Source: Mytilus californianus
Lineage: Eukaryota
Reading direction: 5' to 3'
Assembly: GCF_021869535.1 (NCBI RefSeq)
Contig: NW_026262745.1
Coordinates: 59,706,001-59,770,000, forward strand
Length of the DNA stretch: 64,000 nucleotides
Of this stretch, positions 308 through 60,751 are shown one piece after another. The notes beneath the pieces were generated by a model. The model did no database searches. It worked only from the letters and a program-made list of their open reading frames with translations, and was not told the origin of the DNA. Position 1 is the stretch's first letter; each line of letters begins with the position of its first letter. The position numbers and the translations under genes are program-made.

Positions 308-2281
308 ACAACCCAACACAACAAATATCAAGAGAACTATTTTGGTATATGTGTCATCATATAGTAGGAACCGAAGACCATGTAAAACAAATCAGGTTGT
401 TGAATGCGGTCAGGGATAATCTGTCAACTGACAAAAACCACATAACTATAACAAGTATAAGTTTCGGGGAAGGACTTCAGATGAGAGGTAGTGATTGAGA
501 TTTGATGTCTGTCCATAGAAATGTGAAGGTTTATGAAGTAAAGTCTTAATCAAAATATATCATATCTGTCAATGGATACAGACGATGTTAAACCTGGATA
601 TACTCAGTTGAGACCAGAATATACTAGAATAAAGAATTTTTTTAAAACAATTGTGTGATAAGCATTATATATCCAGCACATTATGAAAGCTGCGCTTAAA
701 GCCTACAGTAAACTGCAAAATTCATGGACTGTGTATATCCAACAAAGATGAGTTTACTGACTTTGCCGAATGCTTTCACTGTAAAACGTTGGTTACAACT
801 GCTGTACATTAGATAACAAGATCAAATAACTTATGGCCAAGTTATAATGTCAAACAAAGTATTATAAAACACGGAGAACTTTTTTTTGTACCAATCGGAG
901 TAAAGGGATCACAAAAAGAGCATATAGAATGGCGAATATCATTTTCAGCCGGTGAAAAACTATTAATAAATACCTTTACTCACATTCAATTATTAAGCTA
1001 TGCCATATTAAAAATTCTTTGGAAAGTTAGTATAGCTACTTATCCCGAATGTAGAGAATTACTCTGCTCTTATTTCCTAAAAAGAATTGTTTTCTGGATC
1101 TCTGAAGAACTACCACAATCCGCATGGTAACCTGATCAACTTATACCTAGTTTTATGCAATGTTTTAGAAGACTGATTTTTTTGCGTTGAGTATTCAGTT
1201 TGTTTGTATCATTTCATTCCAGAAAACAATATGTTTGAGAATAAAATTGAGGGTCGTGCTCGTAAAATACTTTTAGAAAAAAGAATACCTTGCATAGTTA
1301 CGGTTGGCAATGCCTTTTGTTTTCATTTCAAGTATCTATTTTTTCTTTATCAATGCGATATTTTAATATGGAACAGCACCAATTTTATGTAAGTGAAGTT
1401 AAGAAAACAATGGATTCAATATTATTGCAAATGGCAAACAAATGTTTCCTTGTTGATTACGAAATAATGTATGCTTCTTCGTTTAATAGAGCAATACAAA
1501 AGACAATTTCATGCGACAAATCTTCAATAAGTTACTTATATACATACTACATGTCATTGATGTATACAGTGCGTGCGTAATCTATTCCTCTTAACAGTGC
1601 ATACAGTGATAATAGATAACAATACCGACAATACAAATCCTGTTTTGTTACTCTGCTACAGAATATCTATCTCTATCACGACGCTGTATCTGGATGGCTG
1701 ATGTTGGCTTCCTTTTTCTACAAACAAAACAAAACAATACGCCAAAGCTTTATACATTATCATGTATTCTTTATCAAAATGTACTTTTAAAAAACTGTAC
1801 TCTTTCATGCAAATGTCGGACTATCGTCATCAATTGTTCAAACTGAAATCACTCCAGAAGAAGATTATTGTTCATTTGTGGAAATTTTGTTTTTGTTTAT
1901 GATATAAATTTTAAAAACAAATCTCTATTAATACCAGATGAACTACTTGTAGAAGTGGATGATATCCCGATAAGGATTCCATCTTCAGTTTATGCGTGAT
2001 TCCTTTGCTTTCTGAGTCATTATCATGTAAATGATGCTAGATAATGCAGAGATACCATCCAAGTTCAGCAACTTGTTATAATATGCAATTATTAAAAAGC
2101 AGATTTGGACTCAACAGCTGCAGCCCATAATCTTCTTGGTGTGGCTTTACAGACTGTAGGCAACACTGAATCCACACGACACGCGTACTTACAATCTGCT
2201 GAATTCAATAGAGATCCATCCGACAATCATGCCGTGAAGAGACATTTGTTATTGGATAAATGTAACTCTTCTATAAAGTAA
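308..2281 (+). pseudogene. cGAS-like receptor (cGLR/Mab-21 NTase) pseudogene, copy 1
   Basis: Starts after the acceptor ATTACAG (301-307). Translates as YMCHHIVGTEDHVKQIRLLNAVRDNL...ISFGEGLQMRGSD*DLM, then VPIGVKGSQKEHIEWRISFS and YHFIPENNMFENKIEGRARKILLEK. It is collinear with the 36877 copy over its whole length, with many stops and frameshifts, including TGA at 496-498 inside the SDxD motif. Confidence 0.9.
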
Positions 2282-2929
2282 TTATTCAATGTTACATGCA
2301 CACGTGATCCTGAGCGAGTGCTTACACAATAACATAATATTCAAGTCTTTCATTGTCGTAGATTCCATAATTGCTTCATATCAAATTTAGTTCTAAGAGT
2401 TAACAAATCACAATTTTATAATAACAAAACATGAATTGCGGAAAAAATTAGAACGTTTATAAATCTGTGAACCGTTACAAGATGATGTCGGAAACAGAGT
2501 ATAACCAAACAAGCCATAATATCATTTTCATTCCAATGCAACATCGTTTGTTACGCTCAATTTGATTAGATAACGTCACGAATTGAACATGCTGAATTCA
2601 CAATTGTTGTTATAAATACTTTCGTGGAAGCGCAAACGAAATATGAAATATTTTAAATGTATGATTTTACGTTGGTTTCTGTCAGTTTCATTAGAACAGA
2701 GATAATAATATTGTATTTTAAGCTCCGACGGCATCAATTGGTGGTTATCACCTTAATTTAAATTGTTTATTGTTTTATTTTCCCATTTCACACAGAAGCA
2801 ATTAAGACCAAAAGATGTACTCAACTTATTTCCGACTGTGATTTTAGCTGTGTAATTTGATATGTATATTATTGGATACCACAGCATAAAGTTCAAAAAT
2901 TAAGTTTAAAAAGTTTAGATTAATATGAA

Positions 2930-4015
2930 AAATCAAATATTCCTCTCGGCATTCCCATATGAACCAATTGTGCTCATCTTCCTGTCAAGTTGTTCCATAA
3001 TTTATATGAGGATGATTTCATGCAGTTACTGTTGACGAAGAATGAATAGAAGCTAGCATTATTAATTAACTTTACTTTCTGCTATATAGATGATGTACTT
3101 TTACTAAATAATTCAAAGTTTGGTGACTATGTTCAACACATTCTTCCCTTCGAACTTGAAATGAAGAATAAAACAGATACAGTTGTATCTGTCTCCTATA
3201 TTGACTAACATCTAGAAATTGTCTATTAGGATCAGTTACTAGACAAATCTGTCCCGCATCCCAAATTGTGAACATTTTATTTCTATGTATGAACATTCAA
3301 GCGGCGAATGCATATAAAATTTATCTTCTAAAAAGTAAAATCGCAAAAATACTGAACTCCGAGGAAAATTCGAAACGGAAAGTCCCAAAGCAAATTGCAA
3401 CATCAAAAGCTCAAACACATCAATGGAAAACAACTGTTATATTCCTGACTTGGTACAGGAATTTTCTTTTGTAGAAAATGGTGGATTAAACCTGGTTTTA
3501 AAGCGCTAAACCTCTCACTTGTATGACAGTCGCATCAAATTCCATGGTATTGACAACGATGTGTGAACAAAACAAACAGACACAATATGTAAAAATATCA
3601 CAATTAGGGGTACAACTATAGTTCTAACTGATACGATATTACAGGGCTTGCATTTGCTCATATATAATTTATCAAAACCAAAATTTCCAAATGCTAAAGA
3701 TGAATTCATCTCTTCGAAATATTTACGGACGCCATCACGAGTTGGCTAAACGTTATGAAATTTCTGTTTGAGAGAAGACAACATATAAATTTCAATTGTC
3801 GTTATCTTTCTAGAAAGAGACCTGCCGAATCAGCCTTTTCACCAGGTTTGTACTTATTTGAAGAGCACGATGGGTGCCACATATAGAGCTGGTTCTGAAT
3901 CATTTCAGAGAACCTATGATCAACCTCGTTTTTTATTGGATTTGTGTTGCTTAGTTTTTATTAAGCTTTTAGTTTTATACTGTTATTTACTTTTTGTCGT
4001 TCTTCGAGTTTTTAA
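2930..4015 (+). mobile_element. Degraded Penelope-like retroelement (RT C-terminal part and 3' tail) with a nested insertion
   Basis: GIPM*TNCAHLP...YEDDFMQ, FCYIDDVLLLNNSKFGDYVQHI (3085-3140) and IVNILFLCMNIQAANAY. After the insertion it resumes with SSLRNIYGRHHELAKRYEISV (3710-3770). Homologous to the 57965-59048 copy. Confidence 0.8.
3330..3620 (+). mobile_element. Non-autonomous interspersed repeat (family C; TACTGAACTCCGAGGAAAATTC head) inserted in the Penelope-like copy
   Basis: The same sequence recurs at 31525-31570 (+), 35098-35205 (+) and, in reverse, at 26395-26715. Confidence 0.75.
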
Positions 4016-4024
4016 TCATTTAAT

Positions 4025-4228
4025 TTATTAATCGGTGTTTAACGTCACTTTCAATATCATTGTGCTATTTCAAAGCGGGCAGTTGTTTTTGGTGAAGGAA
4101 GCCAGAGTGCCTGAACAGAACCGCTGACCTTTGGTAGGAAATATTAATAATCACAGTTAATTAGGATCTGGGTCGATCGCGCCTGCCAGTGCGGGATTCG
4201 AACTCACAATCTCAGTCTTGACTGGCTA
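4025..4228 (-). mobile_element. tRNA-derived SINE, 5'-truncated
   Basis: The minus strand reads GTGAGTTCGAATCCCGC (B-box/T-arm). Its body resembles the SINE-like segment in each macrosatellite unit. Homology stops abruptly at 4228. Confidence 0.65.
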
Positions 4229-4429
4229 CACTTGTTGACGAGAATTATTGACCTTTTTCAAGTCCATTGAATTTATAATCCTTGACTTCAGGTAAACTTT
4301 CGGTTTTTAGGAAGTAGATATAACTGTGCCATCTGATTGGTCAATTTTTTGCTGGTTCCCTGTTTTTTGTTTACTAGTAACCAGATCAAAAACTAAAGTA
4401 AAAGTTGAAATAAACGCAAAAACGTAAAC

Positions 4430-7215
4430 ATGAGTTTAACAAACAAATTTACAATGTTAAGCCCTAAATAAGGCACTAGAAGGACATTTTCTGTTAATAT
4501 TAGGTCAGAGTGGTACTGGTAAAACCTTCATATCAAAAGACGCAGCCCACAAATTGATGAAAATAGGCAAATCTATTTAAAGGAACAGCTTCGACAGGAA
4601 TTGCATCATTACATATTGAAGGTAAAACAATCCATTCCTGGTCTTGAATAGGCGACAGACGATACTCAAAACAAGTTCTTCAAGAAAAAATAGAAAAAAA
4701 TGAGCACATTGCACAATATAAGCAAAGTATACCTAAAACTGATGTATTGTTTATTGATGAGATGTCAATGTTGTCCAAAAAATTGTTTGAACAGTTAGAG
4801 TTCATTTGCAGAAAAACAAGAAATTCCAACTTAATGTTTGGGTGTATTCAAGTTATATCTGTTGGGGATTTCTTCCAACTCCCTTCAGTACATGACGACC
4901 TAAAACTAGATGCCGGAGAGTATTGTTTTAAGTCTGAAATATTTGTTCAATTTTTTCAACACAAATTTGTACTTCAACAAGTTATGCGTCAAAATCAGGC
5001 AGACTTTACCCGGCTACGTCCACTTGTATTTGTAGTATATGTATTGTTATCCATCTGATGAGTTAAGCCTCTTTCAACTGATTTTTATAGTTCGATCTTA
5101 TGTTGTACTGTTACACCACTGTCCCAGGTTAGGGGAGGGTTGGAATCCCACTAACATGTTTAACCCCGCTACCTTCTGTGTGTATGTGCCTGTCCCAAGT
5201 CAGGAGCCTGTATTTCAGTGGTTGTCGTTTGTTTATGTGTTACATTATTTTTATTCGTTCATTTTTTGTACATAAATTAGGCCGTTAGTTTTCTCGTTTA
5301 AATTGTTTTACATTGTCATTTCGGGGCCTTTTATAGCTGACTGTGCGGTATGGGCTTTGCTCATTATTGAAGGCCGTACGGTGACCTATAGTTGTTAATT
5401 TCTGTGTCATTTGGTCTCTTGTGGAGAGTTGTCTCATTGGCAATCATACCACATCTTCTTTTTTATATTTATTAATGCTATTAATGATGTTTCAAGGGTT
5501 GATCTACCAGAAGAAACTAATAATTTTATGAGACTGTCTCGTAGATTACTACATGGTGAAGATCCTATAAGATTATGCTCAAGAAAGTTTAATTGTGACA
5601 TTCACAGTTCATTTAAACTGATAGATATGGAAGGTCAGGTATCAGTATTCACATCAATTGTTGAGGGAGAAAATTAAGATATGAAATCATTTAAATGTCA
5701 AAGAAGGTTGCCCTGTTATGATGCTTAAGAGGGGAAGTGTTACTGCCGTCTCTACTAAAAGCATTACTGTACATTTTAACAATAATAAAGTAGTTGACCT
5801 GAAAAGAGAAACATTTGTATATAGTTCTTTAAATAGTAAAAATTGTGGCATCCCGACTGCAATTTCCATTATGTCTTGCATTTGCAATAACAATTCATCA
5901 GTCACAAGGTCTCACTCTAGATCGTGTTGAAGTGGATTAAAGTTATATTTTTGCTGCAGGGCAATTATGAGAAGCAGTCCGAAGGGCATAAAGAAAAGAA
6001 GGACTGCGTATTTTAGGTTTCAATTCGAAATCAGTCATGCCTCACGATGAAAGCTTATATAAAATTTATTCAGAAAATTCAAATAAAGTTTATGAAAAAC
6101 AATTGTCCTGCTGCAAAAAGAATTTTTGAAGTACCATTCAATGATAATGCTATTAATGTTACAGAACAGGAATGTTTTTTCAATGATTTATCAGATTTTT
6201 GTGTTTAAGAAATTGAAGAGATTGATTTCTTGTTGTCACTTTATTTGGAAATGTGTGATCCGTCTGAGACATTTCCTGTACATGAAGAAACTAAAAATGA
6301 CATAAACTTAGAAAACAATTCTGAATTATTCTCAGGACAGAGAATTTCTCCTCTCGACCAAAGAAGTTCCTCTTCTTATTTTTTGCTTTCAAAAGATAAT
6401 GTTCAACAGTTTGCTAATAAGTAATATTCCGAAATTGAAGGTTTATTTAAAACAGCTTGTGGTGATGTGTCAAATAAAAACACTGACTCAAAGACATGGA
6501 CAAACATTTACTCAGAACTGTATTCATATGCCACCTGTAACGATTATATTCTTCTTGTAAAATCTTTATTCAAATCTGAACCAACTAAAACGGATTTTGA
6601 AATATGTTTAAAACTATTTGACTATATTAAATCTGAAGTTTTGAAGATTTGAAATAACCAATGGACCTCCTAGTGAAAAAACATGACACAAAAAGTGAGT
6701 CAAAGATAAGTATCTCTGATGGGGGGAAAGGCAAAATTAGATATATTGCTGAACGATGTGTAGCAAAATGTCGTTTTCAACATTTTTTTTTAGAAAAAAA
6801 ATAATTTGTACAAGGAGGATAAAATCAAAAGTGTTGTTAAGTCCTTTTTGAAGATAAAAATGATGAATTATCTGACTAAAAGTAGTTCTGATTTGGAAAA
6901 TAATTATAAATACAAAAGTACACTTTATGAGACAAAAAGGAAAACAGAACCTTTCTCAGTAAGTAAGAAGGAAGCGAAAAACTACCTTTTTGATCGAGAA
7001 GAAGAAATCTAAGAATTTGGTCACACAGGAGGACTCATTGACTAAATGTTCAATATGTAATATTATTCAACAAGATGGAGAGGAGTGGAAAGCATATAAT
7101 TTGTGTGATGCCTTTCTGTTATCTTGGGTTGAAAAAAGTTCCATTTTTCTATATCAACAGAGTTATCTCCCATTTTGCTGTTAAAAATTCCTTGCAGAAA
7201 GGGTTTTACCTTTAA
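4430..7215 (+). pseudogene. PIF1-family (SF1B) helicase with a C-terminal extension and degenerate PHD-like finger; disrupted
   Basis: ATG at 4430. Motifs GQSGTGKT (4503-4526), [48 protein letters not shown] (about 5875-5922) and AGQL. Later GKGKIRYIA and CSIC...EEW...LCDA. Several stops and frameshifts plus an insertion at 5009-5467. Confidence 0.9.
5009..5467 (+). mobile_element. Non-autonomous repeat (family A; 3' end CCACATCTTCTTTTTTATA) inserted in the helicase ORF
   Basis: Flanked by TTTA at 5005-5008 and 5468-5471; removing it restores QADF-INAIND. Other copies at 7750-7880, 23960-24110, 24610-24800, 33640-33735, 46912-47016 and 47252-47600. Confidence 0.9.
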
Positions 7216-7749
7216 TGTATAATAGTATGTATTTTCATAAAAGGTTATGTCTCAAATGGTGTAATTCTAAAGAAAATTATCTATAAATTTGTAATTTTCA
7301 GTATATTATATGAACTATGCAAAAAATAAATGTATCGGGGTTGGGTGTGGTTGAACCACCATTCATGTATTACAGAAAGGAAATTCCAATACAAGTCGAT
7401 ATACCAGGTTTTTTTTAGATTTGGAATTATTTTTAATTATGAAATTTTATTTGATTACCAGTGCAATTTATTTTTATAATAATGTTAAATTCAATGTAAG
7501 TGCTTCACATAACACTTTTCAGACTTCAGAGATAGCACATTTTCACTACAAGGATCTGTGAGGTACACAACACTTTCCATACAAAAGCATTGTATGAAAT
7601 ATGTCGTGCTCTGCACAGGCCATTATTATGTAGAAGAAATAGACTTAAATCCTCGAATTTATCAAAAATTTCAAGAACAGATAATTATACAACATTCCAA
7701 AGTTTAAATTCATTCCAAGTTTAAATAGTAGCCTGCTATATATATAAAT

Positions 7750-7880
7750 GACTATGGAGTATGGGCTTTGCTCTTGATGAAGGCCTTATTATGGCCTATA
7801 GTTGTTAATTTCTATGCCATTTGGTCTCTTGTGGAGATTTGCCTCATAGGCAATCAAACCACATCTTCTTTTTTAAATAT
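7750..7880 (+). mobile_element. Family A repeat, 3' fragment
   Basis: GTATGGGCTTTGCTC...GTTGTTAATTTCTATGCCATTTGGTCTCTTGTGGAGA...CCACATCTTCTTTTTT matches 5345-5467. Confidence 0.8.
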
Positions 7881-8149
7881 ATGTATATCCCGTTGGGGGA
7901 TAAAAATTTGTTAGCATAAAAATCTAATTCTAATACTGTTGGGTGTAATTTTCAGACTTATATATATATTTATATATATATATTAATATGCTAACACAAA
8001 TTTGAAGAACTTACAATGCTGAGATAAATTTCAGACGAATAATATATTTATCTAAAAAACGCATAAATGACTGGTTTTGTCAACATCCTTTGGTTTCAAT
8101 AATTGTTTTTTTTTTTACATACATTTCTATTGATTTAAATGTTAATACT

Positions 8150-9865
8150 ATATCAGGTAGTGCATTTGTCTTGGAAGGAGGTCCAAGAACAAATGATTCT
8201 GCTTTAACCCCACCAGTATTCGACTTTATAGATGTTGTTGCCTGTCCTAAAATAATGCTGTTGATGTAAGTCCTATATTAATAATAATTAGGGTTTTTGT
8301 TTGCTCCATGGTTTACGGAACGCTCTTGACAAAATATGTTTTCAACAATATTATTGTTTATTCTTGCTGGAGTTAATTATTTTTTTAATTCAGTAATCAT
8401 TATATGTATAAGAGACATGAAGCCAAGATACAGGAAGTCTAGGTCCACTATAGTTTCCATTGTCATTAAGGTTTTATACCTCTTATGTTTGTCGTCTGAA
8501 CTACTCTACAATTGACTTTTCCCATGCTTTAAACCAATTACATTGTATAAGCTTTAGAAAATAATTCCAACCTTTAATCATTTATGCCTTTTACAGGTCT
8601 AAAATCCTTGAAGAAAGAAACAAGAAAACCTGTATGTTTTAAGAACTGAAGGACACCTTTCATTCCTTCCTGACATGCAACATTCAGACTATTTGTGTAT
8701 TGCTGCTTAAGATTTAACATTTCAGAATCTTAGACGTCAAATGCTATTTTTTTGCGCATTATTAGTGCATTGCTTGGGTAAATGTGCTCCTCTAACAATA
8801 TATGTATGTGAAAACTGTAGTGCGGTCCCAGTTGTAGGCATCAATCCACATTTTCCAAATTATTACAGAATCATTTATGGTAAGTAAACCTTGATGTTAT
8901 TCTAAAAAGCCACTGCTTAAAATGCTGTTCCTTATTTTCTTAAAAAGATGTCAGGGGTCCATAAAAAGAACTATTTTTTTACCTGGATATTTAAAACATT
9001 AGGAATAATATTGGTACATACTATACATTGTATAACTATTAGGAAAATGCATTTTCAGAAATGCACGATTGTTTGCTGACCCATCCATACAACAGTAAAT
9101 TGGCCTAAAGCCCCATCTATACAATTCATCTATGCATAACCAAGTTGTAACAATCATTTCTGAAGGAGAAGCCTTGGTGTTTGGGAAATTAGCAAAGGGC
9201 CACCTAAAATCTGTTAAGTCATTAAAAACATATTGTTGCACATGGTTTGCAATATGGGATTGTAATTTTCCCTCATTTAAATCCTGCACCATTTTCACAT
9301 AATTTAACACTATCTGACAATCCGCCATAATACCCTTTATCTAATTTAATTTGCCTTTTACCCTCGTTTGACATCTATAGCATCATTTTAGGAATGATAT
9401 CAGGTCCCTGACGGACAGCATTTTTGTATATTTTGGGCATTTGTTCGGATGGCAAATGAAGCCTTTTATTAAGAGTCATATCTCGGTACGCAGCAGGATT
9501 TCTGTTGAATAACACCAATGCCATACATATAACGTATTTATCCCATCTAACACTCGTTTTACTCTTTCCATTAGACAAAACTATTTGAGATAAGATTAAT
9601 GTCAATTGATTGTCAGGTTAATTTGGAGCAATGCTCTTGATTAACTGTATTATTTCTTCTTTGGAAAGCTTAGAATTATTACAAATGTTTTCTAAATATT
9701 TTTTGGATTTTGATGGGTTTTTTTTCGTTCCTGTAAAAGGTGTAAAAATAAACAAACACATGAATTGCTTTTGATACTGTCCACTCATTTACGCTCTTTA
9801 AATCACCTAAAGTTGTATAAATATCTCTTGTCTGTCTATTGTCCATGCCAATCAGGGACAATCAA
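8150..9865 (-). pseudogene. P-element/THAP9-type DDE transposase, disrupted and 5'-truncated
   Basis: The minus strand gives VRWDKYVICMALVLFNRNPAAY...LHLPS, then IANHVQQYVFNDLTDFRWPFANFP, GFRPIYCCMDGSANNRAF, MDP*HLFKKIRN (DxxH, about 8925-8963), IIWKMWIDAYNWDR, and TPARINNNIVENIFCQERS..HGANKNPNYY (third catalytic E, about 8325-8350). The first catalytic-D segment appears deleted. Confidence 0.85.
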
Positions 9866-10760
9866 TACAATACAAAAATTCTAAATAATTTTGCCTTTAA
9901 ATTCTTCTTTTCTTCTAAGTATTACAATGTTACAAAGATTAAGATTTCTGTCCAGCGGCACATATTAGTCATATCTGGATTCATCATTATACAAAGCTGG
10001 AAAATTCCTATTTTCAAATTCAATTTCAAATAAATATAGTCTTGTTTAACAAAAATAAGATTTGTTTGTGAAACGTCTAAAATATGCAATGACTGATTAT
10101 TCATTGTTAGTCTTTAACTCCACTTTATCAATTTTCGCTATTGAATGGCGGCCACCCTTTTTATGGTGAAGAAAGCTGGAGCACCCGGAGGAAACCTTTT
10201 GACCTTCGGCTTGGAAACTGTCAAACATAGTTTTGGAGTCGAACCAAGCTACCACGTTCAGGGTTCAAACTCTGAAATAAGCAATGCAACAATAATTTGT
10301 ATGAATGACAGAAGCTTTTTTCTCACTTTATCCAGTTTTCGTTTGATAGATAGTTTTTTTTGTTATTCAAATTGATAATAGCAATAGGTTTTAAAAAGAA
10401 TTGAAGAAAAAAAACCAAACAGTAGCTGAAGACATAGTTCTTTAAAAGATATGTTTGTCGTTGAGATGCTGTCTCGTTGAGGGAAAATCGTGTATATCTG
10501 GCTTCCAGTCAAACCAAGAACATATCATTGTTTATTTATGTTCCTTGGTTGCTGTCTAATTGGCGTTTTCTTCATATTGTCACATTGATTCACAATACAT
10601 AAGTATATATTTTTAAACATGAAGTTAAGATGTTATGTCATGCATAATTAAGTGCAGAAAAAAAGGCAAAAGAGAGACTCAAAGAACTAAATAGAAAAAG
10701 ACGAAATGATCTGATTTCCAAAAGTGACCTGTTTGGTCGCTCGTAATCGGTTGTCTATAA

Positions 10761-12103
10761 GGGGAAGACCATTTGATATTCTGGGGGGGGGGGGGGGGGG
10801 GGCCGGTGGGGGTGGGGGCAGGAGGATTTGTTATTTGTTTTGGATCGGTTATTTATTTTTGTAAACTAAGAGGACAGATTATCTATTTTCTGCACTATTG
10901 AAGCAAGATTTTTCATTTTCATTAAAGCAAGGGACTGATTATTTATTTTCACAACTATATTTATAATATTCGAAAACATACAATTTTTTAATTATTTGTT
11001 TATTATAAATAATTCATGTATAGTCAAGTCATTATGTACCATTTAATCAGAATTAATTATTATCCTCTGCAGAAATGAATCTTCTATATTCCCCAATGCA
11101 TATACATGTATTGCATACATACACAGTATTAAAGTTTGGTTGTAACTAAGGCTCTTTTAAAGTATTGGCAAACATGTTTCGCCGAGCGGAGCGAGGCAAA
11201 ATTTTTTTTGAAGGGTTTTTGAACCGCTGAAGGCCCAAGAAGCTATAGAACAAATGATGCAAAATCATGCCTTTTGGGTGTTCCCCAGACCCTTTCTTAA
11301 ACTGAAAATGCAAGTTCTGTTTTAATAATTTTATGACAATATTTTGGTCTCAAAGCAAAATCACGTTATAGATTCAGTGTACGACTTAAGTTTCTAGGGA
11401 CAACATCAAAAGACAAATATGCATGATAAAGCAAAAATGTAATTCACATAGTTAAGTCTGTGGCTGCTGTGTTTTTTTAAACTCTGACATGATCAAGTTA
11501 ATAATAAAATTACTAAATTACAAAATGAATGCAACACTAACAGAATACAGAAGGGCAATCAATGAACAAAAGAGAAATAAATAAGAAACATTGATCCCGA
11601 AAAATCAGGGGCTACGTCTAAGGGAGAACAGAACTTGCTTCTTGCAAGACACTCACGGTGAACACAATTTGATATGGAGACAAGCGTTTGGTTTTGAAAT
11701 TTCCTACATGAGGCATTTGTCTCAATGTAGTTACGGCCCTGATTTAATAAAAGTGAGGTAAGTGTTCCTGAGACAAATAACCTCAAGTTAAATGAAACCA
11801 ATTTTCTGACATTTCAAGTATATTTAAATATTTATACTTTTATTATTAAAAGATATGGGAAGTGTTTCCCGATTTTTTTTTTGGAAAAAAGATGAATTTA
11901 TGAAGAATCTTGTGCCATCTCATACTTTCGATTAGACCTGCTGAGTTATTTATTTTCAAAACATTGCAAGTCAGGTAATTTATTTTCAAACTACCACAGA
12001 ACAAACCATTTATTTTTGTGATTATCAAGGCTGAGTTATTTATTTTCAAAATCCTCAGCCCCCCCTCCCCCCCAACCCCCCAGAATATCAAATGGTCGTC
12101 CCC
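10761..12103. mobile_element. Non-autonomous TIR element (PIF/Harbinger-type TAA TSD)
   Basis: TIRs GGGGAAGACCATTTGATATTCTGGGGGG and CCCCCCAGAATATCAAATGGTCGTCCCC. TAA at 10758-10760 and 12104-12106. The empty site GTCTATAAATATAG is present in an uninterrupted array unit (about 13823). Confidence 0.9.
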
Positions 12104-13169
12104 TAAATATAGTTCCTGTCATTTTTTATGTATGTAAACTTTTAGTACTGTGTTTTTTACATATAAAAATCTATGGTTAAAAAAATTAGTTATGTTATTT
12201 CTTTTATAGCGAACTTCAAGATATTTTTTTATTATGCTTTAGGTCATTCGGGCATTGTGGGACTATGTGTCAAATTGTATGAAGGGCAACTCTGCCTATT
12301 CAAGCAGCAACTATTCGCATGTGTCTTGTGACTTCATTCCATGTTTAAGCAGTTCCGAATTAGTAAATTCATGAGTATACGCCAAGACGAGCATCATCTT
12401 TTCAACTTTTGTTTCATTTTGTAGACTGTGTACCTCAAATGTTTTAACTGAAAAAAAAATGTCTTCACTGGGAACCCCAGAGCTGAAACGTGCACACTTC
12501 GGGTTAGCAGGGACAATACTCTTTCCCCCTGTTTTTGTCATTTTTGCACATGGAATCTTTACAGACACTGTCAGTGGTTCAGAGTATTGCTTGTCAACGA
12601 CATGTCTACTAAGACAGTGAATGCTGCATTCGAATAGGGACCGTTCGATTCATTTTCAGAAATTTTGCAATCGTCGAACATAGAAAACACCCTTTTCTAT
12701 TCAAAATAGATATTCTACATTATAAGGTGTCGACGTTAAGTTAGTAATGGAACTTGAATAACTTGTAAAAGTTTAATTTAGTATAAGACTTTAACAAAAG
12801 GTTGCCACATATGTGAATATGATGGACACACCAACCTTCAAAGATAGGTCCCTTCTACATGTATGTTGCTTTGTCCTTTCAATCCTAACATTATCTTCTC
12901 AAATTTAAGCTTTCCTTTAAGACAGTTTACAAATGTTGTAAATATTTCTTCCTTATAATTCTTCGATTCTTTTAAGTATTATTTACAATGTTACAAAGAT
13001 GGAGTTATGTCCAGCGGCACATATTACAGTCCTATCCGGATTCATTATTATACGATGCTGGAAAATTCCTATTGTCAAATTCAATTTCAAATGAAAATAG
13101 CCTTGTTTAAAAAAAATAGGATCTGTGTGTGAAAAGTCTGAAATATACAATGATTGATTTATTCATTGT

Positions 13170-13400
13170 TGGTCTTTAACGCCACTTTAATCATTTCTTT
13201 GCTATATCATGGAGACCAGCTTTTTTATGGTGCAGAAATCTGGAGCGCCCTGACAGAACCACTGACCGTCGGCTGGGAAACTGTTAAACTTAGTTTTGGA
13301 GTCGAACCAAGCTACCACGTGTAGGGTTCTAACCCTGAAATAAGCAATGAAGCAATCATTTGTACTAATGACAGAAACTTTTTTTATCACTTTATACAGT
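13170..13400 (-). mobile_element. Degenerate tRNA-derived SINE inside each macrosatellite unit (this copy as example)
   Basis: T-arm-like palindrome TTCAGGGTTCGAACCCTGAA (perfect at 15049-15068). The body is similar to the 4025-4228 SINE, with an AATCAATC-type tail. Confidence 0.55.
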
Positions 13401-16400
13401 TTTCGTTTGATAGATAGTTTTTTTGTTTTTTTGTTATTCAAATTGAATAAAGCAAGAGGTTTTAAAAAGAATTGAAGAAAAAAAGAAACGGTAGCTGAAG
13501 GCATAGTTCTTTAAAAGATATTTTTCTCATTGGGGTGCTGTCTCGTTGAGGGAATCTCGTGTATATCTGGCTTACAGTCAAACTAATCATATATCCTTGG
13601 TTATTTATGTTGCTAGGTTGCTGTCTAATTGGCGTTTACTTCATATTGTCACATTGATGCACAATACATAAGTATACATTTTAAAACATGAAGTTAAGAT
13701 GTTATGTCATGCATACTGATTACGTGCAGAAAAAAAGCAAAAGAGAGACTCAAAGAACTTAATAGAAAAAGATGAAATGATCTGATTTCCAAAAGTGACC
13801 TGTTTGGTCGCTCGTAATCGGTTGTCTATAAATATAGTTCCTGTCATTTTTTATGTATGTAAACTTTTAGTACTGTGTTTTTTACATATAAAAATCTATG
13901 GCTAAAAGTATTAGTTATGTTATTTCCTTTATAGCGAACTTCAAGATATTTTTTTATTATGCTTTAGATCATTTGGGCATTGTGGGACTATATGTCAAAT
14001 TTTATGAAGGGCAACTGTGCCTATTCAAGCAGCAACTATTCGCATGTGTCTTGTGACTTCATTCCATGTTTAAGCAGTTCCGAATTATTAAATTCATGAG
14101 TATACGCCAAGACGAGCATCATCTTTTCAACTTTTGTTTCATTTTGTAGACTGTGTACCTCAAATGTTTTAACTGAAAAAAAATGTCTTCACCGGGAACC
14201 CCAGAGCTGAAACGTGCACACTTCAGGTTAGCAGGGACAATACGGTGTACCCCTGTTTTGTCATTTTTGCACATGGAATCTTTACAGATACTGTCAGTGG
14301 TTCAGAGTATTGCTTGTCAACATGTCTACTAAGACAGTGAATGCTGCATTCGAATAGGGACCGTTCGATTCATTTTTAGAAATTTTGCAATCGTCGAATA
14401 TAGAAAACCCCTTTTCTATTCAAAATAGATATTCTACATTATAAGGTGTCGACGTTAAGTTAGTAATGGAACTTGAATAACTTGTAAAAGTTTAATTTAG
14501 TATAAGACTTTAACAAAAGGTTGCCACATATGTGAATATGATGGACACACCAACCTTGAAAGATAGGTCCCTTCTACATGTATGTTGCTTTGTCCTTTCA
14601 ATCCTAAGATATCTTCTCAAATTTAAGCTTTCCTATAAAATAGTTTACAAATGTTGCAAATAATTTTTCCTTTTTTCCTTTAAATTCTTCGATTCTTTTA
14701 GGTATTATTTACAATGTTACAAAGATGAAGAGTTATGTCCAGCGGCACATATTACAGTCCTATCCGGATTCATTATTATACGATGCTGGAAAATTCCTAT
14801 TGTCAAATTCAATTTCAAATAAAAATAGACTTGTTTAACAAAAATAAGATCTGTGTGTGAAACGTCTGAAATATACAATGATTGATTTATTCATTGTTGG
14901 TCTTTAACGCCACTTTAATCATTTTTTTTGCTATAACATGGAGACCAGCTTTTTTATGGCGAAGAAAGCTGGAGCGCCCTGACAGAACCACTGACCGTCG
15001 GCTGGGAAACTGTCAAACTTAGTTTTGGAGTCGAACCAAGCTACCACGTTCAGGGTTCGAACCCTGAAATAAGCAATGAAGCAATAATTTGTACTAATGA
15101 CAGAAGCTTTTTTTCTCACTTTATACAGTTTTCGTTTGATAGATAGTTTTTTGTTTTTTTTTTTATTCAAATTGAATAAAGCAAGAGGTTTTAAAAAGAA
15201 TTGAAGAAAAAAACAAACGGTAGCTGAAGGCATAGTTCTTTAAAAGATATTTTTGTCGTTGAGGTGCTGTCTCGTTGAGGGAATCTCGTGTATATCTGGC
15301 TTACAGTCAAACCAAGCACATATCCTTGGTTATTTATGTTGCTAGGTTGCTGTCTAATTGGCGTTTACTTCATATTGTCACATTGATGCACAATACATAA
15401 GTATACATTTGAAAAACATGAAGTTAAGATGTATACTCATGCATACTGATTAAGTGCAGAAAAAAAGCAAAAGAGAGACTCAAAGAACTAAATAGAAAAA
15501 GATGAAATGATCTGATTTCCAAAAGTGACCTGTTTGGTCGCTCGTAATCGGTTGTCTATAAATATAGTTCCTGTCATTTTTTATGTATGTAAACTTTAAG
15601 TACTGTGTTTTTTACATATAAAAATCTATGGCTTAAAGTATAAGTTATGTTATTTCTTTTATAGTGAACTTTATGATATTTTTTTATTGTAATTTAGATC
15701 ATCTGGGCATTGTGGGATTATGTGTAAATTGTACGAAGGGCAACTCTGCCTATTCAAGCAGCGACTATTCGCATTTGTCTTGTGACTTCATTTCATGTTT
15801 AAGCAGTTCCGATTGAGTAAATTCTTGAGTATACGCCAAGACGAGCATCATCTTTTCAACTTCTGTTTCATTTTGTAGACTGTGTACCTCAAATGTTTTA
15901 ACTGGAAAAAAAATGTCTTCACTGGGAACCCCAGAGCTGAAACGTGCACTCTTTAGGCTAGCAGGGACAATACTCTGTACCCCTGTTTTGTCATTTTTGC
16001 ACATGGAATCTTTACCGACACTGTCAGTGGTTCAGAGTATAGCATGTCAACGACATGTCTAATCAGATACGGAATGCTGTATTCGAATAAAGACCGTTCG
16101 ATTCATTTTCCGAAATTTTGCAATCGTCGAACTTCGAAAACACCCTTTTCTATTCAAAATAGATATTCTACATTATAAGGTGTCGACGTTAAGTTAGTAA
16201 TGGAACTTGAGTAACTTTTAAAAGTTTAAATTGGTACAAAACTTTAACAAAAGGTTGCCACATATGTAATATGATGGACACACCAACCTTCAAATATAGG
16301 TCCCTTCTATGTTGCTTTGTCCTTTCAATCTTAAGATATCTTCTAAATTTTTAGCTTTCCTCTAAAATAGTTTACAAATGTAGCAATTAATATTTCCTTT

Positions 16401-19400
16401 AAATTTTTCTATTCTTTTTGGTATTACAATGTTAAAAAGATGAAGAGTTATGTCCAGCGGCACATATTACAGTCATATCCGGATTCATCATTATACGATG
16501 CTGGAAAATTCCTATTGTCAAATTCAATTTCAAATAAATATAGACTTGTTTAACAAAAATAAGATAAGATTGTGTGAAACGTCTGAAATAAACAATGATT
16601 GATTTATTCACTGTTGGTCTTTAACGCCACTTCAATCATTTGTTTGCTATTTCATGGCGGCCAGCTTATGGTGAAGAAAGCTGGAGCGCCCGGACAGAGC
16701 CACTGACCTTCGGCTGGTAAACTGACAAACATAGTTTTGGAGTCGAACCAAGCTACCACGTTTAGGGTTCGACCCCTGAAATAAGCAATGATGCAATAAT
16801 TTGAACTAATGACAGAAGCTTTTTTCTCACTTTATACAGATTTTTAGTTGATAGACAGTTTTTTGTTTTTTTGCTATTAAAATTGAATATAGCAAGAGGT
16901 TTTAAAAGGAATTGAAAAATCAAACAAACGGTAGCTGAAGGCATAGTTCTTTAAAAGATATTTTTGTCGTTGAGATGCTGTCTCGTTGAGGGAAAATCGT
17001 GTATATCTGGCTTACAGTCAAACCAAGAACATATCCTTGGTTATTTATCTTGCTATGTTGCTGTCTAATTGGCGTTTACTTGATATCGTCACATTGATGC
17101 ACAATACACAAATATATATTTTAAAACATGAAGTTAAGATGTTATGTCATGCATAATTAAGTGCAGAAAAAAAGCAAAAAAGAGACTCAAAGAACTAAAT
17201 AGAAAAAGACGAAATAATCTGATTTTCAAAAGTGACATGTTTGGTCGCTCGTAATCGGTTGTCTATAATTATAGTTCCTGTCATTTTTTATGTATGTAAA
17301 CTTTTAGTACTGTGTTTTTTACATATAAAAATCTATGGCTTAAAGTATTAGTTATGTTATTTCTTTTATAGTGAACTTTATGATATTTTTTTATTGTAAT
17401 TTAGATCATCTGGGCATTGTGGGACTATGTGTAAATTGTACGAAGGGCAACTCTGCCTATTCAAGCAGCGACTATACGCATTTGTCTTGTGACTTCATTT
17501 CATGTTTAAGCAGTTCCGATTTAGTAAATTCTTGAGTATACGCCAAGACGAGCATCATCTTTTCATCTTTTGTTTCATTTTGTAGACTGTGTACCTCAAA
17601 TGTTTTAACTGAAAAAAAAAAATGTCTTCACTTGGAACCCCAGAGCTGAAACGTGCACACTTTAGGTTAGCAGGGACAATACTCTGTACCCCTGTTTTGT
17701 CATTTTTGCACATGGAATCTTTACCGACACTGTCAGTGGTTCAGAGTATTGCTTGTCAACGACATGTCTACTAAGATACGGAATGCTGTATTGGAATAAA
17801 GACCGTTCGATTCATTTTCAGAAATTTTGCAATCGTCGAACATAGAAAACACCGCTTTCTATTCAAAATAGATATTCTACATTATAAGGTGTCGACGTTA
17901 AGTTAGTAATGGAACTTGAATAACTTTTAAAAGTTTAAATTGGTACAAAACTTTAACAAATGGTTGCCACATATGTAATATGATGGACACATCAACCTTC
18001 AAATATATGTCCCTTCTATGCTGCTTTGTCCTTTCAATCTTAAGATATCTTCTAAATCTTTAGTTTTCCTCTAAAATAGTTTACAAATGTTGAAAATAAT
18101 ATTTCCTTTAAATTCTTCGATTCTTTTAGGTATTACAATGCTAAAAAGATGAAGAGTTATGTCCAGCGGCACATATTACAGTCATATCCGGATTCATCAT
18201 TATACGATGCTGGAAAATTCCTATTGTCAAATTCAATTTCAAATAAATATAGACTTGTTTAACAAAAATAAGATAAGATTGTGTGAAACGTCTGAAATAA
18301 ACAATGATTGATTTATTCACTGTTGGTCTTTAACGCCACTTCAATCATTTGTTTGCTATTTCATGGCGGCCAGCTTATGGTGAAGAAAGCTGGAGCGGCC
18401 GGACAGAGCCACTGACCTTCGGCTGGTAAACTGACAAACATAGTTTTGGAGTCGAACCAAGCTACCACGTTTAGGGTTCGACCCCTGAAATAAGCAATGA
18501 AGCAATAATTTGAACTAATGACAGAAGCTTTTTTCTCACTTTATACAGTTTTCGTTTGATAGACAATTTTTTGTTTTTTTTGTTATTAAAATTGAATATA
18601 GCAAGAGGTTTTAAAAGGAATTGAAGAATCAAACAAACGGTAGCTGAAGGCAAAATTCTTTAAAAGATATTTTTGTCGTTGAGATGCTGTCTCGTTGAGG
18701 GAAAATCGTGTATATCTGGCTTACAGTCAAACCAAGAACATATCCTTGGTTATTTATCTTGCTATGTTGCTGTCTAATTGGCGTTTACTTGATATCGTCA
18801 CATTGATGCACATTACATAAGTATATATTTTAAAACATGAAGTTAAGATGTTATGTCATGCATAATTAAGTGCAGAAAAAAAGCAAAAAAGAGACTCAAA
18901 GATCTAAATAGAAAAAGACGAAATAATCTGATTTTCAAAAGTGACCTGTTTGGTCGCTCGTAATCGGTTGTCTATAATTATAGTTCCTGTCATTTTTTAT
19001 GTATGTAAACTTTTAGTACTGTGTTTTTTACATATAAAAATCTATGGCTTAAAGTATTAGTTATGTTATTTCTTTTATAGTGAACTTTATGATATTTTTT
19101 TATTGTAATTTAGATCATCTGGGCATTGTGGGACTATGTGTAAATTGTACGAAGGGCAACTCTGCCTATTCAAGCAGCGACTATACGCATTTGTCTTGTG
19201 ACTTCATTTCATGTTTAAGCAGTTCCGATTTAGTAAATTCTTGAGTATACGCCAAGACGAGCATCATCTTTTGTTTCATTTTGTAGACTGTGTACCTCAA
19301 ATGTTTTAACTGAAAAAAAAAATGTCTTCACTGGGAACCCCAGAGCTGAAACGTGCACACTTTAGGTTAGCAGGGACAATACTCTGTACCCCTGTTTTGT

Positions 19401-21092
19401 CATTTTTGCACATGGAATCTTTACCGACACTGTCAGTGGTTCAGAGTATTGCTTGTCAACGACATGTCTACTAAAATACGGAATGCTGTATTGGAATAAA
19501 GACCGTTCGATTCATTTTCAGAAATTTTGCAATCGTCGAACATAGAAAACACCGTTTTCTATTCAAAATAGATATTCTACATTATAAGGTGTATACGTTA
19601 AGTTAGTAATGGAACTTGAATAACTTTTAAAAGTTTAAATTGGTACAAAACTTTAACAAATGGTTGCCACATATGTAATATGATGGACACACCAACCTTC
19701 AAATATAGGTCCCTTCTATGTTGCTTTGTCCTTTCAATCTTCTTAATCTTTAGTTTTCCTCTAAAATAGTTTACAAATGTTGAAAATAATATTTCCTTTA
19801 AATTCTTCGATTCTTTTAGGTATTACAATGTTAAAAAGATGAAGAGTTATGTCCAGCGGCACATATTACAGTCATATCCGGATTCATCATTATACGATGC
19901 TGGAAAATTCCTATTGTCAAATTCAATTTCAAATAAATATAGACTTGTTTAACAAAAATAAGATCTGTGTGTGAAACGTCTGAAATATACAATGATTGAT
20001 TTATTCACTGTTGGTCTTTAACGCCACTTCAATCATTTGTTTGCTATTTCATGGCGGCCAGCTTATGGTGAAGAAAGCTGGAGCGCCCGGACAGAGCCAC
20101 TGACCTTCGGCTGGTAAACTGTCAAACATAGTTTTGGAGTCGAACCAAGCTACCACGTTTAGGGTTCGACCCCTGAAATAAGCAATGAAGCAATAATTTG
20201 AACTAATGACAGAGGTTTTTTTCTCACTTTATACAGTTTTCGTTTGATAGACAGTTTTTTGTTTTTTTTGTTATTAAAATTGAATATAGCGAGAGGTTTT
20301 AAAAGGAATTAAGAATCAAACAAACGGTAGCTGAAAGCATAGTTCTTTAAACGATATTTTTGTCGTGGAGATGCTGTCTCATTGAGGGAAAATCGTGTAT
20401 ATCTGGCTTACGCACAAACCAAGAACATATCCTTGGTTATTTATCTTGCTAGGTTGCTGTCTAAATGGCGTTTACTTCATATCGTCACATTGATGTACAA
20501 TACATAAGTATATATTTTAAAACATGAAGTTAAGATGTTATGTCATGCATAATTAAGTGAACTTGAAAAGCAAAAATTAGACTCAAAGAACTCAATAGAA
20601 AAAGACGAAATAATCTGATTTTCAAAAGTGACCTGTTTGGTCGCTCGTAATCGGTTGTCTATAAACATAGTTCCTGTCATTTTTTATGTATGTAAACTTT
20701 TAGTACTGTGTTTTTTTTTACTAATAAAAATCTATGGTTTAAAGTATTAGTTATGTTATTTCTTTTATAGTGAACTTTATGATATTTTTTTTATTATGCA
20801 TAGGTGGGGCTTACTTCAATACACGGTTAGTAGTGGTGTTATGTTCCTTTATAAAACAACACGGTGTTGAGGAAAAATTTTAAAGGTTTCAACAGACGAA
20901 GAAATCGATGATGAACGATTGAAATAAATTCACAAAGCACATTTTAAGCTTACACGTTGTTATTGTTGGCATTTGCTTGTGTATAGACCAATGGAAATAA
21001 GTTCTTAATACTAACGGGATTGAAGACTTGATCACTTTGATAGGCCACTAGTCTAAATACAACGTATTTAAATCAGTCGGTAAGATAAATTC

Positions 21093-21219
21093 GTTACATA
21101 GTGTGCTAGTGACGATATATATGGGGTCAGTAAATTCCATATGGGTTCTTCGCTCTCACCCCATATGGAATTTATTGACCCTGTATATATCGTATTAGGT
21201 CACTAGCACACTATGTAAC
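21093..21219. mobile_element. Palindromic (fold-back) MITE
   Basis: Arms GTTACATAGTGTGCTAGTGAC...GGGGTCAGTAAATTCCATATGGG and CCCCATATGGAATTTATTGACCCC...GTCACTAGCACACTATGTAAC around a short loop. Confidence 0.85.
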
Positions 21220-60311: not shown

Positions 60312-60751
60312 CCGCCATGAAAGAGCAAAGAAATTATAAAAATGACGTTAATGACCAACAATGAATAAATCAATCATTGTATATTTCAGATGTTTCGCAC
60401 ACATATCTTAATTTTGTTAAACAAGACTATATTTATTTGAAAATGAATTTGATAATAGAAATTTCCAAGCATTGTATAATGATGAATCCGGATATGACTG
60501 TAATATGTGCCGCTGGGCATCAATCTTAATCTTTGTAACACTGTAATACCTTGAAGAAAAAAAGAATTCAAAGGCAAGATTAATTACAACTTTTGTTACT
60601 TATTTTAGAAAAAAGCAAAACATTTAGAAGATGTCTTAGGATTGCAAGGACAAAGCAACATAGAAGGGACCTATCTTTGAAGGTTGGTGTGTTCATCATA
60701 TAACATATGTGGCAACCTTTTGTTAAAGTCTTGTACCAATTAAAACTTTTT
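60312..60751 (-). repeat. Solitary inverted partial copy of the 1.7-kb macrosatellite unit
   Basis: GATGAATCCGGATATGACTGTAATATGTGCCGCTGG and GAAGGTTGGTGTGTTCATCATATAACATATGTGGCAACC are reverse complements of array sequence (e.g. 16220-16665). Confidence 0.9.

Follow-up and report, generated by a model that had tools for sequence, protein, structure and literature searches.

A dead mussel copy of an apparently undescribed P-type transposon family in which a PIF1 helicase-PHD gene adjoins the transposase gene

Why should a gene for a PIF1-type helicase lie tail to tail with the remains of a P-type transposase gene? The two pseudogenes converge near the left end of the window (the whole stretch of DNA that was analysed, 64,000 nucleotides), and their juxtaposition could reflect a single mobile unit, a cargo gene riding in a transposon, a broken Helitron beside a P element, or two fossils that share nothing but a neighborhood. 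The reading that best accounts for the evidence, with a probability of roughly 0.88, is that the stretch in question (Table 1) is what remains of a P-type cut-and-paste element, now dead and truncated at both ends, from a family with members of about 8 kb in which the helicase protein is a probable partner of the transposase.

Table 1. Features of the two-gene element and its surroundings, in window positions
Feature	Positions	Strand	Remarks
Left flank: unrelated repeat	4020-4227		also present, in part, in the 1.7-kb tandem units on the right
Truncated, decayed two-gene P-superfamily element	4228-9705		both TIRs absent, no TSD; from collinearity with the M. edulis copy L003
PIF1 helicase/alpha-helical domain/PHD finger pseudogene	4430-7200	+	intact length ~1031-1059 aa
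PIF1-type SF1B helicase core	4443-6126	+	Walker A 4461-4577; motifs II-III in 4648-5007; late motifs 5836-5940
Short interspersed repeat inserted in helicase ORF	5009-5467		flanks contiguous in L003 at ~10451
Alpha-helical middle region remnant	6062-6959	+	GKGKIRYIA-RCVAK motif at ~6710-6770 opens a domain similar to the C-terminal domain of P transposase
Junction of 743-bp internal deletion	6959-6961		~250 middle-region codons gone relative to L003 11981-12722
C-terminal PHD finger remnant	6963-7181	+	aligned to residues 950-1002 of the L003 ORF
Spacer between convergent genes	7200-8157		from comparison with L003 and other Mytilus copies
P/THAP9-type transposase pseudogene	8158-9693	-	tblastn: residues ~82-607 of the 607-aa L010 reference
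Junction of 73-bp deletion	9322-9323		stretch encoding first catalytic Asp (LDEM motif) lost
Right flank: start of ~1.73-kb tandem-repeat array	9871-16000		outside the element

The limits of the copy were set by comparison with L003, of which positions 9676-16055 are collinear with window positions 4228-9693 at 84-88% DNA identity across both genes and the spacer. Homology to other copies also begins at 4228/4229, a real left edge. An earlier note on this DNA had taken the CA-starting sequence at 4229 ("CACTTG") for a terminus; however, the true terminus of L003, CACAGGCACTTGTTTC, lies at its position 9452, and the window edge corresponds to L003 9676, so that the proposed terminus lies within the left repeat, about 224 bp from its outer end. 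The CACAGGCACTTGTTTC motif has no occurrence anywhere in the window, even with three mismatches allowed. On the right, the copy breaks off at about 9705, within the N-terminal region of the transposase. The left flank had been labeled a SINE, a name for which no support was found: it contains no tRNA-like gene and has no Rfam match, and it is related to part of the 1.7-kb tandem repeat. The repeat inserted in the helicase ORF has further copies in the window and at Mytilus loci, and a fragment of it within the spacer (7743-7888) sits in the same relative position as in other copies from Mytilus. As had been proposed, the two genes are decayed to a similar degree, with at least six frame changes and 12 in-frame stops in the helicase gene and at least four and nine, respectively, in the transposase gene. 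With neither end preserved and both genes disrupted, the copy is uninformative about function and ends; it is the dead representative of an element that has intact copies in other mussels, clams and an acorn worm.

One of the two genes in these intact copies encodes a predicted PIF1-family SF1B helicase. When the intact 1031-aa L003 ORF was used as a tblastn query, window positions 4443-7112 were covered in at least seven frames, and the piece from 4648 to 5055 matches Pfam PF05970 (PIF1) with an E value of 6e-14. The window ATG at 4430 is the counterpart of the true start codon of the L003 ORF, which lies about 20 residues ahead of Walker A. The only Pfam domains in the intact ORFs, which are 1031-1059 aa long, are PIF1, Pif1_2B and PHD, and there is no Rep/HUH domain. 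Intact proteins match PF05970 with E values of 1e-35 to 5e-40, with PF21530 detected too, and PF00628 identifies the PHD finger at their C-terminal end (24.7-30.4 bits), giving a domain order of N-terminal PIF1-type SF1B helicase, conserved helical region of about 430 residues, and C-terminal PHD finger. The helicase with its own ATG, nothing of the Rep/HUH kind in front and a PHD-like finger at its end had all been described from the window, where only a remnant of the finger is left, and all agree with the intact relatives. Against the PDB, residues 2-409 of an intact homolog match fungal and human PIF1 (E 1e-68 to 2e-59), whereas the match to the Helitron helicase Helraiser is far weaker (E 9e-22).

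The transposase belongs with the Drosophila P element transposase, both by sequence profile and by predicted fold. The minus strand of the window scores 0.95 to TNP-like_RNaseH_N clusters in Atlas, and homologs carry the UniRef name "Transposable element P transposase-like". The pseudogene lacks the N-terminal 130-200 residues, and the motifs from which a convergent P/THAP9-type transposase had been recognized could all be located in it: D..H at about 8950, broken by a stop, W..W within 8795-8896, and ENIF within 8281-8376. Intact family members are P/THAP9-type DDE transposases of about 730-790 aa, all of which keep D381 (the first catalytic Asp, in LDEM), D481 and the D..H motif unchanged (alignment A3). 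PF21787 matches all 24 family members and exceeds its gathering cut-off in the L003 and L007 transposases (31.3 and 33.5 bits), while PF21788 (GBD) is found in six of the 24 and reaches 24.1 bits in L007 against a cut-off of 24.8. When the family profile was compared with all solved structures, the only match was to the Drosophila P transposase (6p5a), with an E value of 2.6e-12 over three collinear stretches, and the ENIF stretch aligns to P transposase as well. An AlphaFold model (pLDDT 77.6) likewise had 6pe2_A and 6p5a_A as its best Foldseek matches (E about 1e-18, TM 0.71-0.73, 505-535 columns), the next being RAG1 with an E value of 4e-6. The two ends of the protein are less typical. No THAP domain was detected, residues 1-340 of P0183 matching no Pfam family, and a confident beta-rich domain is predicted at residues 100-220 of the model; at the other end, every family transposase stops about 65 residues past the ENIF motif, and the P-type C-terminal domain is absent.

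Do the two genes belong together? The earlier note had proposed a single mobile unit in which a P-type cut-and-paste element carries an SF1B helicase gene, and had suggested looking for convergent co-occurrence elsewhere. Both genes are indeed linked in convergent orientation at 10 further loci in at least seven species, including four Mytilus species, Tegillarca, Pinctada, Ptychodera and ENA assemblies. These are L003 and L013 in M. edulis, L004 in M. coruscus, L007 in M. trossulus, L006 in Tegillarca granosa, L012 in Pinctada imbricata, L011 in the hemichordate Ptychodera flava, L008/L009 and L010 in ENA assemblies, and L001, which has the transposase and only the tail of the helicase (partial linkage). 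The linkage was seen at every fetched related locus that spanned both sides; at L002 a transposase is present with no helicase found within 9 kb. Complete copies measure 8.0-10.9 kb and consist of two intronless convergent genes between TIRs of 286-369 bp that start with CACAGGCACTTGTTTC in Mytilus and Tegillarca, with 8-bp TSDs. L003, L004, L006, L007, L010 and L013 share one identical terminal motif. The TIRs are 100% complementary in L007 (9591-9876 and 17753-18038) and in L006 (9592-9960 and 17179-17547); those of L004 are at 15500-15765 and 23642-23931. Exact 8/8 TSDs are CGCAAAAA in L007 and ATTTTTAT in L013, a 7/8 match was found in L004 and in an L008 derivative of 96 bp, no TSD was seen in the complete L006 copy, and L012 shows no clear one. 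Thus, the TIRs and 7-8 bp TSDs that had been anticipated do bound both genes, in the form of shared TIRs and 8-bp TSDs, but the TIR start proposed for them was wrong. In L008, one pair of terminal motifs encloses the helicase gene alone.

The M. trossulus copy (L007) combines perfect TIRs with two intact ORFs of 1042 and 730 aa. Compared with L004, dN/dS is 0.14-0.38 for its helicase-PHD gene and 0.06-0.39 for its transposase gene; by this measure, both genes are under purifying selection. Across 10 loci, the protein identity matrices of helicase and transposase are correlated with r = 0.94 (Mantel p = 2e-4), a mark of co-divergence, and the convergent layout persists from bivalves to the hemichordate, with protein identities of 30-90%. 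Enclosed by common TIRs, the pair is passed on jointly across these groups, and the single-unit proposal stands on this linkage, the shared TIRs and TSDs, and the co-divergence.

It might still be supposed that the remains of a P element and of a PIF1 gene or Helitron simply came to rest tail to tail as unrelated fossils, as the window copy, which has neither TIRs nor a TSD and lies among other repeats, might suggest. This has a negligible probability, since the arrangement recurs at the 10 other loci within shared TIRs with TSDs, the window and L003 are collinear through both genes and the spacer, and shared TIRs enclose both genes in L004, L006, L007 and L013, which refutes chance juxtaposition. 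Nor does a 5'-truncated Helitron or Helentron RepHel remnant beside a P element fare better, although transposon-borne PIF1-type helicases are typical of Helitrons and the earlier note had itself named a separate Helitron among the findings that would speak against a single unit. The intact ORFs open some 20 residues ahead of Walker A and contain no Rep/HUH domain according to Pfam, the helicase is at or near the N-terminus in all of the 150 closest relatives checked by position, the Helraiser match is the weaker one, and the unit bears TIRs and 8-bp TSDs, which are absent from Helitrons. The intact copies thus refute this origin too, leaving it next to no likelihood.

A more serious alternative is that the helicase is a passenger, a captured host PIF1-like gene that rides in a P element outside the transposition machinery. 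Such a gene would benefit the element only indirectly (for example, by countering silencing) or not at all, as a selfish addition. Capture from a host is compatible with a helicase core that is nearer to cellular PIF1 than to Helraiser, no sequence-level tie was found between the helicase protein and any transposase domain, and L002 has a transposase with no helicase nearby. On the other hand, host fragments captured by DNA transposons usually decay fast, whereas this convergent pair is conserved from bivalves to a hemichordate, its proteins co-diverge, and its helicase gene is under purifying selection by the measure above. Moreover, the C-terminal domain has been lost from all of the transposases, while the partner holds a domain of that fold. 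Passenger status is therefore improbable, and a functional partnership between helicase protein and transposase is preferred.

What could such a partner contribute? When the middle region of the helicase protein was compared with 48,161 chains, the best match was the P transposase C-terminal domain (6p5a_B 617-734), with 118 of 118 residues aligned at an rmsd of 2.8 A and a Z score of 8.7, a value within the chance range for helical models, the resemblance being structural only; the runner-up on that sub-domain had a Z score of 5.4. Neither Pfam PF12596 nor profile searches of PDB sequences found a sequence-level trace of the P C-terminal domain in the helicase protein. In P transposase, this domain is all-helical, with a flexible linker, and contacts single-stranded transposon DNA as well as target DNA (PMC7776569). 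Transposases without the C-terminal domain, together with a matching helical domain in the helicase protein, suggest a split transposase. Tentatively, then, this might be a P lineage whose C-terminal domain moved into the PIF1-PHD protein, a lineage that would either predate the split between bivalves and hemichordates or have spread horizontally, and that would probably still be active in M. trossulus. If so, transposition would need a two-protein transpososome that includes an SF1B DNA motor and a chromatin reader.

Its conservation inside the element suggests that the helicase protein would work together with the transposase and would not be cargo. Given that part of its helical region resembles the C-terminal domain, now missing from the transposase, that contacts DNA, this protein may dock into the transpososome and supply the missing domain in trans. 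The transposon ends would thereby acquire a 5'-3' single-strand DNA motor, which could help to melt or process them or could power long-tract repair synthesis across the donor gap, and chromatin tethering of the complex could fall to the PHD finger. The earlier note had suggested that the helicase could aid gap repair or replicative transposition.

How does this element compare with known systems? A P-type transposon with an adjoining PIF1-PHD gene is a real and apparently undescribed kind: no published description of one was found in the literature, Repbase and Dfam being outside the scope of that search. A PHD finger is carried by RAG2, and the RAG-like elements share with the two-gene family such a finger on an accessory protein. 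These elements (ProtoRAG/RAGL), which occur in hemichordates and protostomes (PMC7204232), also have convergent transposase and accessory genes inside TIRs; however, their transposase is of the Transib/RAG1 type, and their accessory protein is a kelch-repeat protein and no helicase. Helitrons and Helentrons resemble the family in placing a PIF1-family SF1B helicase (in RepHel) in a eukaryotic DNA transposon, but the two-gene element has a DDE transposase, TIRs and TSDs, and no HUH/Rep domain. KolobokH, Kolobok-1_CCri and Academ are, like it, cut-and-paste DDE elements that encode a helicase, which in Kolobok-1_CCri is on the complementary strand (PMC9587614). The Kolobok and Academ helicases, however, are RecQ-type (SF2), their transposases belong to other superfamilies, and the Kolobok TSD is TTAA (PMC9587614), in contrast to the P-type transposase, PIF1-type (SF1B) helicase and 8-bp TSD without TTAA found here. 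With the P superfamily (the Drosophila P element, THAP9/Pdre, Galileo and 1360), the family shares the transposase fold and sequence family, an insertion domain that splits the RNase H core, a D..H motif after the second Asp, an 8-bp TSD (PMC7776569) and termini that start with CA. It differs in the added convergent PIF1 helicase-PHD gene and in a transposase without a detectable THAP domain, having a predicted beta-rich N-terminal domain instead, and without the C-terminal domain. The TIR is 31 bp in the P element, as opposed to 286-369 bp in the two-gene family; long TIRs are a feature that it shares with Galileo.

The analysis supports a family of elements that belongs to the P superfamily as a variant in which a helicase-PHD partner gene is conserved and the transposase, to judge from a predicted structure, is possibly split. 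P elements, among the best-studied eukaryotic transposons, are regarded as single-gene, and, Helitrons aside, no SF1B helicase is so far known to be paired with a DDE transposase. The superfamily would gain a new class of accessory gene with a widespread marine-invertebrate lineage in which the PIF1 helicase-PHD partner is always present.

Loci were fetched around relatives of the helicase-PHD protein and, independently, around relatives of the transposase, and in all of those with enough sequence on either side the two genes form the same convergent pair. The pair is present in M. edulis (L003, L013), M. coruscus (L004) and M. trossulus (L007), outside Mytilus in Tegillarca granosa (L006), Pinctada imbricata (L012) and the hemichordate Ptychodera flava (L011), and also in ENA assemblies (L008/L009, L010). 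The earlier note had read the two genes as one mobile unit, to be sought together at other loci; the pair does recur from Mytilus to Ptychodera flava, and long terminal inverted repeats enclose both genes in L004, L006 and L007. The arms measure 369 nt in L006 and 286 nt in L007, each pair being 100% complementary, and the outermost bases, CACAGGCACTTGTTTC, are identical in L003, L004, L006, L007, L010 and L013, with a variant in L008. Exact 8-bp target duplications flank L007 (CGCAAAAA) and L013 (ATTTTTAT), and 7 of 8 positions match in L004 and around a 96-bp derivative in L008; the L006 ends examined show no target duplication, and L012 no clear one. A duplication of 8 bp fits P elements (PMC7776569).

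Complete copies are 7,956 bp (L006), 8,432 bp (L004), 8,448 bp (L007) and 10,939 bp (L013, with insertions) long. With two intact ORFs (1042 and 730 aa), the L007 copy looks, from its sequence, autonomous and recent. Pairwise identities of the two proteins correlate across ten loci (r 0.94, Mantel p 2e-4), in agreement with the proposed co-phylogeny; since related copies have a common history, this value indicates co-inheritance, not interaction. For L007 versus L004, the only comparison used because synonymous sites are saturated among more distant copies, dN/dS lies at 0.14-0.38 in the helicase-PHD gene and at 0.06-0.39 in the transposase, and both genes have therefore been kept functional during the spread of the element.

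Some loci depart from the common layout. The M. coruscus locus L001 keeps the transposase and the tail of the helicase, with a local inversion: the stretch that encodes the transposase's C-terminal RNase H portion (L001 11083-11292) runs opposite to the remainder of the gene and directly adjoins the helicase-tail gene at its end. Another assembly (L002 9755-11515) has a related P-like transposase, 51% identical to that of L010, with no helicase-PHD gene in the 9 kb downstream; it is a degraded copy or else belongs to a sister lineage that has no helicase. In L008, one pair of termini (6717 / 12765) encloses the helicase gene alone. The 96-bp unit at L008 21609-21704 (and L009 21608-) consists of both element termini only (CACAGGCATTCG... 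and its inverse) and, given its 7/8 matching 8-bp duplication, is a MITE-like non-autonomous derivative of the family. In L003, 105-bp inverted repeats (13503-13608 / 17283-17396) flank the transposase only, as the ends of a separate P element might; they were rejected as such: the stretch containing the left arm is missing from the window copy, where it would fall between 7294 and 7310, and the pair is therefore a later insertion of another repeat.

The window copy itself is a fossil only. Aligned by tblastn with intact relatives, its helicase gene is spread over at least 7 frames with 12 in-frame stops and its transposase gene over at least 5 frames with 9 stops, a similar decay of the two, as the earlier note had judged. 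Homology to L003, at 84-88% DNA identity, begins at window 4228 (L003 9676) and ends near window 9705 (L003 about 16062). In L003 the left terminus proper is at 9452, and the left repeat of the window copy has lost its outer 224 bp; the right side lacks the entire right repeat and about 600 bp that code for the N-terminal part of the transposase. The family terminal motif has 0 occurrences anywhere in the 64-kb window, and an inverted-repeat search of the window gave no pair bounding both genes. With the true end 224 bp farther out and the motif nowhere in the window, the CA-starting sequence CACTTGTTGACG at 4229, proposed as the element's terminus, was rejected and is an internal breakpoint adjoining an unrelated repeat. 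Thus the predicted terminal repeats and 7-8 bp duplications hold for the family, and the placing of a terminal repeat at 4229 does not. Scans of window 3500-10500 for tRNAs and Rfam families were empty.

Features of the window copy and the L007 element (strand and remarks where available)
Feature	Position	Strand	Remark
PIF1-type helicase pseudogene	window 4430-7200	+	tblastn, Pfam
Walker A stretch of helicase	window 4461-4577	+	
Helicase motifs II-III	window 4648-5055	+	PF05970, E 6e-14 from this piece alone (Pfam)
Interspersed-repeat insertion, 459 bp	window 5009-5467		inside helicase gene
Late helicase motifs	window 5836-5940	+	
Deletion, 743 bp	window 6959/6961		
P/THAP9-type transposase pseudogene	window 8158-9693	-	
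Deletion, 73 bp	window 9322/9323		first catalytic Asp removed
L007 element	L007 9591-18038		

The transposase is a member of the P superfamily, as had been claimed. It could be assigned only through intact relatives and a profile of the family, because single window pieces gave only a weak PF21787 match in Pfam (E 0.043) and, by phmmer against PDB sequences, none. One 113-residue piece (window 9002-9340) scores 0.95 in similarity to TNP-like_RNaseH_N clusters of the ESM Atlas, and its nearest public proteins are mussel P-like fragments. PF21787 scores above the Pfam cut-off in L003 and L007 and matches all 24 of 24 aligned family members. Among solved proteins, the family profile has one match only, the Drosophila P element transposase (E 2.6e-12), in three collinear stretches that correspond to the HTH, insertion-domain and C-terminal RNase H regions. 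The top two Foldseek matches of the AlphaFold model (mean pLDDT 77.6) are to the P element strand-transfer complex (E about 1e-18, TM 0.71-0.73); RAG1, Transib and Hermes rank next, at E 4e-6 or worse. No THAP domain was detected in the first 340 residues. A beta-rich domain is confidently modelled in this N-terminal region (about residues 100-220 of the family transposase P0183), and nearly invariant cysteines (C222, C233, C236) follow it, where P elements have the THAP finger. A putative P C-terminal motif, "FIYIAGYY" (window about 7700-7742, - strand), lies in an interspersed-repeat fragment of the spacer and is taken as chance.

PIF1-type helicases in transposons are, to our knowledge, otherwise the mark of Helitrons, and the helicase gene could in principle have come from one. 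Helitrons, however, have a Rep domain and lack terminal inverted repeats and target duplications. An exhaustive HMMER search with a 136-residue helicase piece gave as its best matches proteins of 830-1130 aa in which the helicase comes first, at the extreme N-terminus, and a long tail leads to a PHD finger at the C-terminus (the top match, P0009, is 83% identical; P0011, P0014, P0053 and P0062 follow), and a Rep/HUH domain is absent from all of these. The L003 gene is an unbroken ORF of 1031 codons in which Pfam finds PIF1, Pif1_2B and PHD, and its start codon is the counterpart of the window ATG at 4430; the stand-alone helicase with its own ATG and PHD-like finger was thus correctly recognized from the decayed copy. 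The core matches solved cellular PIF1 helicases over its full length (E 1e-68 to 2e-59) far better than it does the Helitron transposase Helraiser (E 9e-22, one stretch only), and a Helitron origin is therefore unlikely on sequence grounds, in line with the earlier view that this is no Helitron. Many mussel and clam proteins that carry the annotation "PIF1" or "ATP-dependent DNA helicase" are encoded by transposons rather than being host helicases.

What might the partner gene do? P transposition leaves long 3' single-stranded ends and depends on helicase-assisted break repair by the host, and the Drosophila Bloom helicase assists in mending the donor breaks that P excision leaves (PMC7776569). 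The suggestion of the earlier note that the element-encoded helicase may aid gap repair is thus a reasonable one. Having the helicase in the element makes it directly testable how transposition is limited by the processing of the ends or the repair of the donor gap.

The partner protein may also contribute to the transposase. All family transposases stop about 65 residues past the ENIF motif, and so have no C-terminal domain, which in P is entirely helical, sits on a flexible linker and touches both the target DNA and the single-stranded DNA of the transposon (PMC7776569). The helicase and the PHD finger are separated by a 430-residue helical region with a confident predicted fold, for which there is no Pfam family, no PDB sequence match, nothing at E <= 0.001 by Foldseek against the PDB, and in the Atlas only TM <= 0.23 by fold and no match by features. 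In an exhaustive structural alignment of the model with 48,161 representative chains, the top match is the P transposase C-terminal domain (6p5a chain B 617-734; 118/118 residues, rmsd 2.8 A, Z 8.7; next match on the sub-domain Z 5.4). The aligned part, model residues 199-393, starts at an invariant G-GK-RY-G motif. Among the searches made, only this aligner found the likeness. Since the transposase lost the domain and its partner has one of the same fold, a split transposase is suggested, in which a catalytic protein without the C-terminal domain would work with a partner where such a fold is fused to a single-strand DNA motor. The rival is chance: this is a single structural score in a helical domain, and chance matches of such size occur, so that the odds for a split transposase are put slightly short of even. 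If true, the element would be a natural two-polypeptide transposase, parallel to the two-gene logic of RAG1/RAG2.

Helicase-bearing DDE transposons have been described (KolobokH, Kolobok-1_CCri and Academ), but their transposases belong to other superfamilies and their helicases are RecQ-type, unlike the P/PIF1 element (PMC9587614). A full-text literature search, with Repbase/Dfam curation outside its scope, returned helicase-bearing Kolobok and Academ lineages but no P-superfamily element with a PIF1-PHD gene. With its convergent transposase gene and PHD-bearing accessory gene, the element resembles RAG-like transposons in layout (PMC7204232).

Several repeats surround or invade the copies. 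A repeat fragment occupies the same relative place in the spacer of four Mytilus copies (window 7743-7888; L003 14178-14304; L004 about 19141-19332; L007 about 13244-13437); because the proteins of these copies share only some 60% identity, it is an old nested insertion or else gave rise to that repeat family. A separate insertion of this common Mytilus interspersed repeat lies in the window helicase gene (5009-5467). In L003, the left terminal 295 bp (9450-9743) recur in direct orientation at 19719-20013, 10.27 kb downstream, inside a 0.9-kb perfect palindrome (18831-19720 / 20608-21500) and with the right terminus absent, reflecting either a rearrangement or an assembly artefact. Immediately upstream of the element, L008/L009 have an LTR-retrotransposon gag-protease-RT block (475-6168). 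Both flanks of the window copy, left (4020-4142) and right (from 9871), are part of one 1.7-kb tandem repeat family, which forms an array of about 1.73-kb units directly to the right of the element (window 9871-20000, starts near 12928, 14672, 16385, 18082 and 19772), with an inverted partial copy of the unit at window 60508-60596.
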